Assembly (NCBI GenBank): GCA_002269645.1
Contig: NIVC01000532.1
Location: 1-64,000 of the forward strand
DNA length: 64,000 bases
From: Macrostomum lignano
Lineage: Eukaryota
Direction of reading: 5' to 3'
The position numbers were made by a program, and so were the translations under genes. Shown here piece by piece: positions 39,801 through 45,800 of the stretch. Position 1 is the stretch's first letter; each line of letters starts with the position of its first letter. The notes under the pieces were generated by a model. The model was not told where the DNA came from. It was given only the letters and a program-made list of their open reading frames with translations, and made no database searches.

Positions 39801-42800
39801 TCCTCTTCATATCTTCTCAATCTGCGTCTCGATTGGGTTAAGTATGAGTAGCTCAAGCGGCAACTTAAGCTGAGTTGAGTTGCGGTGGGAATACGTAATG
39901 GGAGTTGTAGGCTGGATACAGCTCTCGGATGCACCGCGATTGCAGCGGCTGCTTCCTTTGGCTAAAAGAAGCATAAAATGTAAAGACACTTCGTAACAAT
40001 TGTGTTGCATTGCTTTGTTGCAACAACTGAACTCAGAAGCCAGTCTTCAGTTGTATTTCTCTAATGCAGCATTTATTATCCCGGTAGGTTAGGGTTAACA
40101 TCGGACGCTTTTGCTTACAAAAAGACTCATAAAACGAATGCCAGATTAAAAAGAGTAGCCAAAGTATATAAGGTACGTTAATGCTCGTAGGTGAGGAACG
40201 GAGCGCTTAGAATAGGGAATTTAATTATGCACGAAAAATGAGAGAAATTCATCAGGACAGAGCTGGAATGGCATCGAAGGAAGGCGGCATCCTTTGGGAA
40301 GAGAGCTGGTTGGGCCAAAATCTCCTTAGCGCACGGGCAGGGTAGAATTTCGCAAATTAGCTCAGAGCAGAGCCTCTCTCTAGATCGAGTGTGTGAGCGA
40401 ATTCTCTTTCATTCACTGAGGGCTTGGTGGAACTCCTCAAAATGTGAAGAGCGCTCCCGCACCTCTCTTTTGTCGACAGCATAAGAACTGCTTATGTGCT
40501 CGAGTTCCTGTATGCTAGAACAGATGAAGGCCAAAATTGATTATTTTAATCCAGGGGTAACCGTATAAGAAGCTGCTTTTCACATAAAAAGTCAGCGGGT
40601 CTGAGCATTCTGCACTGAGTTCGTCTGCGATTCACGCCTATATGGGAAGCGCGGGTGGTATGACACAAGCATAAGGTGCTAATGAGAAAGTCAGGGAAAC
40701 TGTACATCCGTGTTAGCGTGCTTGCGTACGTATCCGTGTTCTATTACAGTACTACTACTTTAGTGCTATGCAGTTGCACCCAGAGGCTAAAAACCCAATC
40801 TAAGAAAAGCACAACATGAAAGTACATTTTCTCCGTCAAAAAATAGTCTCAATAAAAATAGCTTTTGTTAACGGACAATCAGGAACAAAAATAACTGGTC
40901 CCTATCAACTCAGTCCCGGATAACTTCGGGGTCGGCCATAATGTGCACGTTGGCCTTCTTCTTGGGCAGATGCTCGCTCAGCAGCCAGTAGGTGGTTAGC
41001 TCGCCTTTACCCTAAAATTCGGGTCAGAGATAAGGAAGTTGTAGCTGGTAATTTAAAACGTCACTAAATTCAGAAGACAGGTTTTCGAACTGGCTAACCT
41101 TAATTGACACTTTCCCGCGCGATTTAAGATAGAACTTCTCCGCTATAAGGAGATCGGCCGTCTCTTCGCTGACGTGAATTTTCAGGTCTGGAGTGGATGG
41201 TTGATTAATATATATTACACGAGCGTATAAATAGATTGCCTAGAGGTTCTAGAGCAGAGCTACAAACTAGTTGGATAATTTATCATGCGCTTTGGACGCT
41301 CGATCTGTGCTTTATACGCGCACATGTACCCCTGTTTAAAGTACATTAATTGTACGAGTGACATGCGTGGCATAGCAACAGATTGAATTACCGGTGAAGT
41401 TCTCTGTAGGTTGAGCTTGAGAAATTTGTTAGTTAGAATTTATATGCACTTAAACGCACTTTGTTTACGGTTAAAAAAGCTTCAGGTAAAGCAGGCTGGT
41501 TCGTATAACAGCAATGGAATCTCAGGGTCATACTAGTCATGATGCCGTGGTTCAAGACTATGAAGAGGAGAGGAGAGATAAGCTGGTGACTATCGTGAAG
41601 GGTATTAATGACTACCTTGGAGTGCTAGTGCAATAACTTGGAGGGCTATTGACATAACACATAACCAACCACTCTGGGTTGGTAAATAACTACTTGGATT
41701 GCTAATTGCCGCTTAATAAAATGAGAAACAACAATGGAAGACAAGAAAAAGTTGTAGTGACACTAAAGCCATAATACGAGTCTCTAAAGTCGTACTGACC
41801 AGCTCCGTGCGAGCACATCCGCGACGCGTGTTGACGGTGTCACCAAACAGGCAGTAGCGCGGATTAGTCTGCCCCATGATGCCAGCGACCACAGATCCTA
41901 GGGATTCAGTGAAGCTGTAAGATTCACAACTGCCAAGGATTTTCTCCCAGGAGCTCTGGGATTAGATTTTCGACTTTGGAGTGTTGCTTGTTGGAAGGAT
42001 CCTCGTTGGAAGGATAAAAAATTCCGGGATTATTGATTTTGCTGACTGACCAAATTAGAAAGTGTCTTTTAACTCATTGCATTTCCTGCTTGCTACGAGT
42101 ATGCTTCAAGCATAAGAATACGCTCTATGTTATGTTAGGCTGTCCCGGCTTGAAATATCTTAAATTAAAGTATTCAACAAACCTGTGTGAATGCCAATCT
42201 TCAGTAGCACCTGCTCCTCGGGTAGGTGCTCGATGTGAATCTCTTTGGCTGAAGCGAGTAGATCCAGGCTCAGTCTGGCAATTTCCGTGACGTGACGTAG
42301 CCCGTTTCCTACTGGCACTCCGCTGACTACCATGTACGTGTCGGCGATGGTTTCCACTTTGTACACCTGGTACTTGTCGATCTCTGCGTCGAAAATTCTG
42401 AAATTAGCATCACTTTATAAGCTTTTGACCAAGTTCTAATCCTCTGTAAATACACATCGAACTCATCGTCAGTCCGTTGATGTGTCCCATCGTCACCATC
42501 GACTATCAAAAGTCATTTGGTGTGTCCCATCATCACCATCGACTATCAACAGTCATTTGGTGTGTCCTATCATCACCATCGACTATCAACAGTCATTTGG
42601 TGTGTCCATCATCACATCGACTATCAAAGTCATTTGGTGTGTCCTATCATCACCATCGACTATCAACAGTCATTTGGTGTGTCCCATCATCACCATCGAC
42701 TATCAACAGTCATTTGGTGTGTCCCATCATCACCATCGACTATCAACAGTCATTTGGTGTGTCCTATCATCACCATCGACTATCAACAGTCATTTGGTGT

Positions 42801-45800
42801 GTCCCATCATCACCATCGACTATCAACAGTCATTTGGTGTGTCCCATCATCACCATCGACTATCAACAGTCATTTGGTGTGTCCTATCATCACCATCCAT
42901 CATGAACAGTCCGTTGATGCGTTTCATCATCATGAACTTTTACTATAGCCAGAACAAATGTACAGTAATTTACTGTAGCTTCAGCCAGCTCACCCGTAGA
43001 TGTGGTTTAAGAGCACCATAATTTCTATGGGCCGACTCCGACTAACAATGTACTTAAAGTTGGACACGCAGCTGAAGTATACGGTGGCGTGATCGAACTG
43101 TTTAGGCTCCGGGTTGCCGCCATCTCGTAGAATGCGAGCTACCTGTTTTGGCAGCATCATGTGGATGAGATCCAGAGCCCTGGTCTGCGGGAGTTCGGGA
43201 AATATTCGAGAGATGGCGAAACTCTTGTTGGGAAGGCAAGCACTGATTAGTGACATATTTCCAGTAATTGGCAGTGTGGAAATCTTTCAAGTCCCTTCAA
43301 TCCATCCATTAGTAGTGTCTCTGATTATGAATGATCAACAACCGCTAAGCTCTGTAATTTGGTTCATGCGCCGATCACGGGTTTCCTCATTCATCCAGAT
43401 GTCGCGTTTCATTGGCCCAGCTTCCAAGTGCTTAGAATATAGGATTGGTGAAAACAATGATTATAGAGAGAGGCGGTGATTTTGGGAAAGGCTTCATTAA
43501 AGCCTGCCAAAATACATACCAGGATGCAACTTTTTCCTTTTGATTTTCTGGTTAACAGAGACTACGGTCTTGCTTTTAATAATGATATGGTAATTTATTA
43601 ATAGAAATTTTGGCCTCCAGATGCTCAAACGTCAGCGCAAAACAAGTTGTTTTTTTGCAAGAAAAATCTGCGGCTAAATATCGAGCATCTGATCAACTTT
43701 TTTAACATTAGAATTCATCTGTTAAAGGCGCCGACCGGCGTCCGGGTGAGGACGGAATGCTTGAGAGACTAGCTGAGGATGTCCCGCAGTTGAACTTTGC
43801 CCACGGTCGAGGCTTGATCAGCGACAATAGAGAAATTCGCATCAGGGTGTCCATAGTCACCTGGTGCGACCTGTTGAAAGTCTAAAAGCTCCGCCTGGGT
43901 TAAAGCCTGTGACCAACAACGTCAGAGTTGACGCAATCACAATTTGTCGATGTGCTGATGAAATTTGGAGGCCTGGCAAGGCTGCACTGAGGCGCAGTGC
44001 TGATTGGCGCACAGGGGTGTACTGAATACACTGGCGCTTCTGGGAAAAATCCGACCTTCTGGCTGAATCATTGAATATCTCGACCGTCCGGGTCCGGCGC
44101 AACCCCCCCCCCTCAATCTCGGTAGTTCGACGAGCGGAAAAATATCTTGATGATCCTACTGTTAAGAATATTAACCCTTGAATAATGGAACTGATTTATT
44201 CAACTTTATAGTACATTTATGTTGTTGGGCAACCTTGTCTTTTTAAAACCAGTTTCCAATTAGCAATACCTGTTGCGCAAACATTTCGTTCCGCTTGTCG
44301 ATGATGAGCTCCCCAAGGCCGACCCGATCCTCCCGGCTGAGCCGCAGCTGCCGAGAGTAAAACACGGCGATTCCTGCACAGACGGCCAGCAGTAGCGGGA
44401 GGCCGATGCTCATCCCCGCCAGGCCAACGCCCGAGAGGGACGCGTCGTTAGAAGCGGCCGAGTTGAACTGGGCTGCCAGACTGTTCAGCTGGTCGCGCGC
44501 CGAGGCCAGCCAGAGATCGGCGAGGTAGGCGAAATCGGCCGCTCGAGCAGCTGAAGTTGCGTTGCCGCCGGCTTTGCAGTCAGCGCTGACGGAGCCGTCC
44601 CTCTCCTCCTGCAGAAGGCGCTGGGTGATCGCCATCAGAGCAGCCGTTGGCGTGGTCTCGGCCGCCTCCAGAGAGGCAAAAAATAACTTCAAGTGTTGGC
44701 TGTAGCGACTGGCACCTCGGGCCGCTGCGTTCGCCTGTCCATTTAGGCGATGCAGCTCGCCCCAGGCTGCCAGGCAGTTGCCATGCAGAATTGCGTAGCC
44801 GATCGCATAGAACTGTTGCTGGAATAGCAGGTACCGGGTCAGGTAGGAGCTGGCTGCCAGCAGCTGCCACAGCTCGTCTCGAACGACCGGCTGCCCGACG
44901 ATCGAGGACGCATGATAGGCCGCCCTACTTGATGCGGCGTAGTCAGACACCAGCGCCACCACCATCTGCTGCCGTTGCTGCGGCTCTTCAATGACGCCCA
45001 TTTTCGTCATATTGTCCAGCCGGCCGCGCCAGTCAAGCACCTTCTCAGTAGCTGACGATGGAGCAACGGCCAGGTGGAATCGGGCCGCCGACGCAGGCCT
45101 CGAGGGCTCCAAGATGAGCCGAACTCCTGCCCACATCTCGGCGCCGAGGGCCAGCGAGGCCTCAGTAGAAGCGCTCAAGCGACTGTAGGCTGCCATGAGA
45201 CCGTGCTGACCGGTCAAGCTGCCGGATACCTCGGCCATCTGCTGGCTAAGGAAGCCGACAGCCAGGGCCACAGGTAGCAGCAGGATTAGCGCCAGACGCA
45301 GGTAGTAATAAATCATTCCGCGACGATTCTCGGTTGCCAAGAATTCAAACACGCCGATCATCTCAGTATCTTGCTGCTCGGCTTCAAGGCGTTCCTCCAC
45401 AGTGCGCAGGCGGATGTCCAGCGACTCAGAGGAATCGTCCGTCCCGATGTCACCAGTCCCAGTGGCGGCGCCCGTGATTGAGTTGTCATAACTTCCCACG
45501 CGAAGACTCGATCGCGGCACATCTGAGGGAGTCAAAAATACAATAGGGCGGATTGGATCAGATCAGGAATGAAAGAATAGTTCATTAAGCAATGTATCAG
45601 TTTCCTGCAATTACCTGAAACTCGGTTGTCAAACTTTATTGGCATCTTGTCTGGGAGAGAAAATTTTCGTGACGCTGTTCACAACTCAGCTGGTTTTCTT
45701 AGTCAGCTAGTTTTTCTACATCCGACGTCACCTTTAAATGACTGTTCAAGGTGATAGAGCGGCATCTCATTGGCCGTCCTCTGTGATTGGCTGGATTAAC

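Follow-up and report, generated by a model that had tools for sequence, protein, structure and literature searches.

We describe a receptor guanylyl-cyclase (GC) gene that lies on the minus strand within an intron of a plus-strand host gene, ADGRV1, of the flatworm Macrostomum lignano. The analysis covered a 64-kb stretch (the window) of contig NIVC01000532.1 in the reference Mlig_3_7 (GCA_002269645.1). With a rough probability of 0.5, the gene is a young pseudogene of a receptor cyclase that was already catalytically dead, and a single frameshift was the recent disabling event. Rather than a new kind of sensor, the locus is most likely a relic, either recently dead or non-catalytic. It appears to be an unannotated, divergent and probably defunct member of the receptor GC family in M. 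lignano.

The gene model, with seven exons on the minus strand (45645-40910), was built from six-frame translation and the raw DNA. Its six introns are all GT-AG and all 12 splice sites are intact. An earlier reading of the window from sequence only (the sequence-only reading) had placed a gene at 40910-45645, and the same seven minus-strand exons were recovered. The exons and main parts of the predicted protein are as follows.

45615-45645, minus strand: putative exon 1, with ATG at 45645-45643, encoding MPIKFDNRVS plus 1 nt and followed by the donor GTAATT; proposed from sequence alone
44270-45522, minus strand: exon 2, encoding the cytosolic N-terminus, transmembrane segment (TM) 1, the ectodomain, TM2 and the start of the signalling helix
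~45304-45245, minus strand: TM1, residues ~84-103, a Pro-containing hydrophobic segment
44432-45247, minus strand: orphan helical ectodomain of 272 amino acids (aa), Ala/Leu/Ser-rich and predicted to be all-helical
~44416-44357, minus strand: TM2, residues ~380-399, the second hydrophobic segment
42994-43184, minus strand: exon 3, encoding the end of the signalling helix (LPKQVA) and the cyclase beta1 strand with FSCVSNF
42183-42397, minus strand: exon 4, with YKVET (specificity Glu) and ETIADTYM (second metal Asp kept, adjoining G>A)
41800-41897, minus strand: exon 5, encoding GQTNPRYCLFGDTVN, then the frameshift between 41828 and 41827
41099-41187, minus strand: exon 6, encoding (D)LKIHVSEETADLL...KVSIK, which continues exon 5 only when the latter is read in its −1 frame
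40910-41011, minus strand: exon 7, encoding GKGELTTYWLL..., with the stop TGA at 40912-40910

The predicted protein consists of a TM, a 272-aa helical ectodomain, a second TM, a helix of ~40 aa and a class III cyclase; a kinase-homology domain is absent. The hydropathy peaks of the TM1 and TM2 segments were 2.3 and 2.2. Hydropathy, helix prediction and the match to PF00211 thus bore out the previously proposed order of TM, helical domain, TM, coiled coil and cyclase without a kinase-homology domain. Exon 2 is open for 439 codons, with a chance probability of P~1e-6 from composition, and 0 of 20000 shuffles stayed open. Its G+C content is 62%, against ~40% in the introns. An alternative start to putative exon 1 is the Met at 45361, within exon 2. 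If the exon-2 acceptor is a spliced-leader (SL) trans-splice site, main-frame translation would begin at this Met, just ahead of TM1. An ATG right at the same acceptor opens a 57-codon out-of-frame upstream open reading frame (ORF; 45522-45350, minus strand). The poly(A)-like hexamer closest to the stop of the cyclase gene is ATTAAA at 40550.

The cyclase domain matched PF00211 in Pfam at E=7.1e-49, with 179 of the 183 profile positions covered. The best match in the structural database was the catalytic domain of human NPR1 (PDB 9BCV), to which the conceptual, frame-corrected read-through product aligned ungapped and end to end with 51% identity over 209 aa (E=3e-62). By fold and profile match, the domain is a guanylyl-cyclase-type class III nucleotidyl cyclase. 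As the sequence-only reading had noted, FSDIVGF is replaced by FSCVSNF, with the Cys codon TGC at 43070-43068, and the GTP-specificity Glu (YKVET), the specificity Cys (RYCLFG) and the second Asp (IAD) are kept, all three aligning with the NPR1 residues. The first of the two metal-binding Asp residues is therefore Cys and the second is retained (ETIAD).

The domain was compared with a small panel comprising human NPR1, a placozoan ANPR-like GC and several GCs with a NIT-type ectodomain (NIT-GCs) from the supplement of PMC7400543. In this alignment 58 of 71 invariant columns were kept and 12 differed, in addition to the D>C change. Among the deviations are I>V and G>N, both within the beta1/phosphate loop, a G>A change beside the second Asp, KM>TN just ahead of PRYCLFG and, within ASRMES, E>C. 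Each of the active-site changes requires multiple nucleotide substitutions, and they are concentrated at the catalytic centre. Identity to the panel was 46-51%, compared with 53-60% among the panel members themselves, and this cyclase formed a long branch. Over five full domains, pairwise identity was 46-50% to NIT-GCs and 48-51% to ANPR types. A protein search with the cyclase alone retrieved no relative above 56% identity; the best were ANPR-like fragments, with Haliotis rufescens at 56%. The first metal Asp was retained in all nine of the nearest database relatives retrieved. A search with the full-length protein gave three bacterial HAMP-cyclases alone, candidate selection having evidently been swamped by low-complexity words. 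The clustering of changes at the active site, together with an intact fold, intact splice sites and intact codons elsewhere, points to long upkeep as a non-catalytic or heterodimer-only cyclase and not to long neutral drift.

The reading frame is broken in exon 5. The spliced coding sequence (CDS) has 1979 nt (mod 3 = 2), and one base is missing between 41828 and 41827, inside N-T-A-S-R, where the Thr codon is cut to AC. In the genomic frame exon 5 runs ...GDTVNTRRGCARTEL and reads RYCLFGDTVNT RRGCARTEL. ASRMCSHGA is readable in the −1 frame only, and that frame alone joins exons 6 and 7; tblastn likewise broke the cyclase match into frames −2 and −1. The Asn/Arg motif (NT.SR) had been taken as kept. 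This did not hold, as the Asn is in frame and A-S-R is reached only after the −1 shift. The case shows how a catalytic motif that is in fact broken can seem intact when motifs are read by eye past a frameshift. The product from the canonical donor has 597 aa and stops one codon past the exon 5/6 junction, two exons short of the end, without the Arg of the Asn/Arg pair and without the last ~60 residues of the fold. The 1-nt deletion is the only disabling lesion in the coding sequence, which contains no other stop or indel. With the frame corrected, the product has 659 aa and reads ...GDTVNTASRMCSHGADLKIHVS...

A pair of donor sites follows the frameshift at the end of exon 5.

41792-41799, minus strand: tandem donors GTCAGTAC, the canonical one after 41800 and a second GT 4 nt downstream, giving an exon end at 41796

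With exon 5 ending at 41796 the frame would be restored, because −1 + 4 = +3. The CDS would come to 1983 nt and contain only one stop, at its end, forming a 660-codon open frame that reads ...NTRRGCARTELVNLKIHVS..., and the product would have RRGCARTELVN in place of ASRMCSHGAD. Other splice solutions that keep the genomic frame were considered and rejected: none but the +4 donor fits the canonical exon-6 acceptor, and upstream cryptic GTs delete the motif.

The locus has no gene model in the reference. In the record range 43624-65711 only ADGRV1 and TTLL12 were called, with nothing on the minus strand at 44270-45645. The Mlig_3_7 annotation was derived from RNA-seq transcripts via StringTie/TACO/TBONE/TransDecoder (PMC5730564), and the lack of a model here suggests that there is no assembled coding transcript. 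This leans against the sequence-only reading, which had itself named an untranscribed locus with dN/dS near 1 as a ground for refutation. The assembly was made from PacBio continuous long reads (CLR) with Canu and polished with Pilon, and the DV1 genome contains 180 Mb of duplicated blocks of at least 95% identity (PMC5730564). These properties cut both ways, since the sequence could still contain residual indels, and a redundant copy can decay freely. The neighbouring ~21 kb of coding sequence (ADGRV1 with 6380 aa and TTLL12 with 695 aa) has intact frames, which speaks for good local base accuracy.

Past selection on the lineage is suggested by the open frame of exon 2 (P~1e-6), by the six GT-AG introns and by comparison with its sole relative. 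An exhaustive phmmer search with exon 2 against 1.84e9 representatives retrieved that single relative, the protein P0004, which is 56% identical over 114 aa around TM1. It is encoded at positions 206-694 of L001, a 946-bp Logan contig (SRR31628403). With the window L001 shares only a coding match, of 73.6% over 125 nt. The ratio of nonsynonymous to synonymous divergence (dN/dS) against L001 was ~0.19 with dS saturated, a value that reflects ancient divergence and indicates that the family was protein-coding in the past. The ORF of L001 ends at a GTGAGT-like donor, which points to an intron at a place where exon 2 of the window runs on uninterrupted. A word search with the ectodomain found nothing, and an exact look-up of ten candidate ORFs and spliced products, including the repaired protein, found none of them in the collection.

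The ectodomain had been described as NIT-like, and we found no detectable relation to NIT in tests that recovered every published NIT-GC control. This, too, leans against the sequence-only reading, which had listed a domain unrelated to NIT among its grounds for refutation. Pfam gave no match to the ectodomain even at E<=10. As controls for PF08376, seven published animal NIT-GCs scored 1.6e-12 to 5e-33 over nearly the full profile, including ones without the second 'ER' motif. Against a hidden Markov model made from 31 published NIT-GC N-termini, the query scored −2 bits. When the ectodomain alone was compared with NIT-GCs by hhalign, P was 0.13, and 23 of 200 shuffles were as good or better; leave-one-out controls gave 1e-18 to 1e-36. 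Inclusion of the TMs, the pre-TM basic motif and the post-TM linker produced a collinear alignment (P~1e-3) that was driven by the TM and linker parts, which indicates a shared architecture and not a shared sensor domain. LGAEMWAG and QQQFYA, offered by the sequence-only reading as equivalents of the NIT ligand motifs, have no statistically supported alignment and are placed differently by hhalign. A changed ligand specificity, as had been suggested, cannot be argued without a NIT alignment. The NIT fold is made of two four-helix bundles. Two AlphaFold2 (AF2) models were all-helical with low confidence (pLDDT 42 and 49) and are unusable for or against NIT. With these models Foldseek found nothing in PDB at E<=0.001, and generic four-helix or ferritin-like bundles at E>0.1. 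In the best explanation, the gene has the layout of a NIT-type cyclase, its ectodomain may have diverged beyond recognition and its catalytic centre is degenerate.

In the history that we favour, selection would long have maintained the lineage as a cyclase that was either non-catalytic or heterodimer-only, similar to the beta1 subunit of soluble guanylyl cyclase (sGC). This copy would then have been disabled recently, in the redundant neopolyploid genome of a member of a phylum without NO synthase (NOS). NOS is absent from all flatworm genomes examined, M. lignano included (PMC10728431). Its loss would explain why a receptor of NIT-GC type lost both its sensor motifs and its chemistry. The 597-aa protein predicted from the canonical transcript would have neither the transition-state Asn/Arg residues nor the final ~60 residues of the fold, and it would make no cyclic GMP (cGMP) by itself. 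Judging from the transcript-based annotation, this copy is probably not detectably transcribed.

Several points weigh against a young pseudogene. There is only one disabling lesion in ~2 kb, and the GT located 4 nt past the canonical donor would restore the frame. The missing base could be an assembly error, given a PacBio-CLR/Pilon assembly in which homeologous copies hamper polishing, or it could be confined to one haplotype or homeolog. The absence from the annotation is indirect, as whole-worm RNA-seq can miss a gene of few sensory cells.

The main alternative, possible though in our judgement doubtful, is that the missing base reflects an artefact of assembly or haplotype, the 659-aa product (...GDTVNTASRMCSHGADLKIHVS...) being a functional pseudo-cyclase or a beta-like half-enzyme. 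Such a protein would pair with a membrane GC that supplies both metal Asp residues, giving one active site, or would serve as a dominant-negative or scaffold, with expression too restricted for annotation. The frame-corrected product aligns to NPR1 gap-free across the lesion, exons 6-7 remain open and conserved, and the residue pattern is that of sGC beta1. Active-site-specific decay with a preserved fold is typical of pseudoenzymes. The PacBio CLR and Pilon assembly of a duplicated genome also fits this explanation, and a Lottia NIT-GC that likewise has no Asp at this position (VSNIQGF) suggests that such subunits recur. However, the missing base lies outside any long homopolymer (AACAC^GCG), the ~21 kb of adjacent coding sequence is free of frame errors, and the locus has no transcript-based gene model. 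The KM>TN, E>C (ASRMES) and G>N (phosphate loop) changes alter residues that beta-type subunits normally keep, and the heterodimer partner remains hypothetical. Of the half-enzyme or dominant-negative idea in the sequence-only reading, the residue pattern stood and the intact frame did not, so that the idea is possible only if the frameshift is an artefact or is bypassed. A broader version, which we think unlikely, combines this gene and the one on L001, as at least two members, in a Macrostomum-specific family of two-TM receptor pseudo-cyclases. The family would be derived from NIT-GCs, with a new helical ectodomain and with catalysis given up after the loss of NOS, and would be maintained by purifying selection as beta1-like partners or regulators of other membrane GCs, the frameshift being an artefact or bypassed by the +4 donor.

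It is improbable that the deletion is real and bypassed by the +4 donor (exon 5 end at 41796), producing a 660-aa, fully non-catalytic receptor with a cyclase fold. The resulting CDS of 1983 nt does have a single terminal stop, and the donors of this gene are generally weak (GTTTGT, GTTAGC, GTATTG), which leaves GTACGA within their range. But about one third of the GTs in the vicinity would rescue the frame by chance, CTG|GTCAGT at the canonical donor seems the stronger site, and a core helix-loop of the fold would give way to the out-of-frame patch; use of the donor is also predicted from sequence alone. Hardest to credit is an active homodimeric guanylyl cyclase in which Cys stands in for the metal Asp, perhaps with a thiophilic metal (Mn2+ or Zn2+). 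The second Asp, Glu and Cys are retained, as it would need. Against this, two-metal catalysis in class III cyclases needs both Asp residues, several further invariant residues of the catalytic site are no longer present, and the reading frame is interrupted.

Cyclases with degenerate sites are common, as are young pseudogenes, and the result is mainly a point of annotation. The M. lignano reference has no model for a nested receptor-cyclase homologue, which should be flagged as frame-disrupted and not as a novel sensor. If the frame were intact, the gene would be a membrane-bound counterpart of the sGC beta subunit in a phylum without NO synthase, and a case study of what becomes of NIT-GC-type receptors once their presumed ligand pathway vanishes.

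The host gene on the plus strand has an annotated 6380-aa product with Calx-beta, Laminin_G_3, EPTP and 7tm_2 domains and, by this domain content, is an ADGRV1 (Usher 2C) orthologue. Its plus-strand Calx-beta exons flank the cyclase gene, in agreement with the earlier description of a gene nested antisense inside an Usher gene intron. The host intron is ~6.3 kb and mostly occupied by the cyclase gene. An origin as a retrocopy or processed pseudogene was ruled out by the six GT-AG introns. No second cyclase copy was found within the 64-kb window. The features of this setting are listed below.

39385-39780, plus strand: Calx-beta exon of host ADGRV1, from translation, upstream of the nested gene
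42470-42932, no strand assigned: minisatellite inside cyclase intron 3, with a 40-bp unit, 11.6 copies and 92% match
~46071-46235, plus strand: exon of host ADGRV1 (Calx-beta), downstream of the nested gene

Further minisatellites were located at 46420-47423 (a CT-rich array of 5/31/203 bp, GC skew −0.5) and 47949-48350 (an array of 20/70/130 bp); both sit in the next intron of the host, just past the 46071-46235 exon. Another ADGRV1 intron contains, nested in the sense orientation, an intronless TTLL12-like gene of 695 aa with SET_TTL and TTL domains (53624-55711, plus strand). The GenBank record includes this gene in its annotation, and the gene resembles an insertion of retrogene style. Upstream of the Calx-beta exons of ADGRV1, the plus strand at 8022-~11222 has exons for an amiloride-sensitive sodium channel (ASC/ENaC/ASIC family; PF00858, E=7e-16). 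Within a 59% G+C island at 1377-3926, long open stretches of the minus strand resemble a retroelement (reverse transcriptase) by eye; a piece of them (2394-3353) had no Pfam match at E<=0.01. Repeat-like open frames were also present at 4727-5722, 57362-57819 and 59325-59770.

The topology and sizes of the predicted protein are the same as those of NIT-GCs such as the Trichoplax 'NIT domain GCY1-12' and Platynereis NIT-GC1/2 (Moroz et al. 2020, PMC7400543; Jokura et al., bioRxiv 10.1101/2023.08.02.551600). Shared with them are a short cytosolic N-terminus, basic residues before a Pro-containing TM1, an all-helical ectodomain of ~270 aa, TM2, a helix of ~40 aa, an LPxxVA motif, a C-terminal cyclase and the absence of a kinase-homology domain. 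Unlike NIT-GCs, the gene shows no detectable resemblance to NIT in its ectodomain, neither of the two conserved ligand Arg motifs could be located, its first catalytic Asp has been replaced and its frame is interrupted. Its cyclase is no nearer to NIT-GC cyclases (46-50%) than to NPR1 (51%). GCs of the NPR type differ from this gene: they combine an ANF-receptor ectodomain with a kinase-homology domain, have only one TM and form catalytically competent homodimers.

Replacement of the first metal Asp was also found in the Lottia gigantea NIT-GC XP_009044753, which reads VSNIQGF (D>N; PMC7400543 supplement 4). This comparison used the first 400 aa, and the survey of the Asp covered published NIT-GCs with the cyclase start visible. 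Unlike the present gene, the Lottia protein has a bona fide NIT-type ectodomain and is part of the profile that detects the controls. Its D>N change indicates that loss of the first metal Asp is not unique and recurs in two-TM cyclases, of which it may be a recurrent feature.

The pattern of sGC beta1 is that of a subunit which provides base recognition but not metal binding to a heterodimer. In sGC beta1 (GUCY1B1; PDB 4NI2_B, 6JT0_B) the first metal Asp is Gly, whereas it is Cys here, and both keep the second Asp, the specificity Glu and the specificity Cys. The 4NI2_B sequence reads FSGIVGF...ETVGD, which agrees with the likeness to sGC beta1 drawn by the sequence-only reading. However, sGC beta1 is soluble, with H-NOX, PAS and coiled-coil domains, its Asn/Arg in frame and a known alpha partner. 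The present gene encodes a two-TM membrane protein with extra losses in the catalytic site and a frame-shifted Asn/Arg motif. While neither a NIT domain nor an intact frame was found in it, the gene fits the NIT-GCs by its layout and sGC beta1 by its residue pattern.

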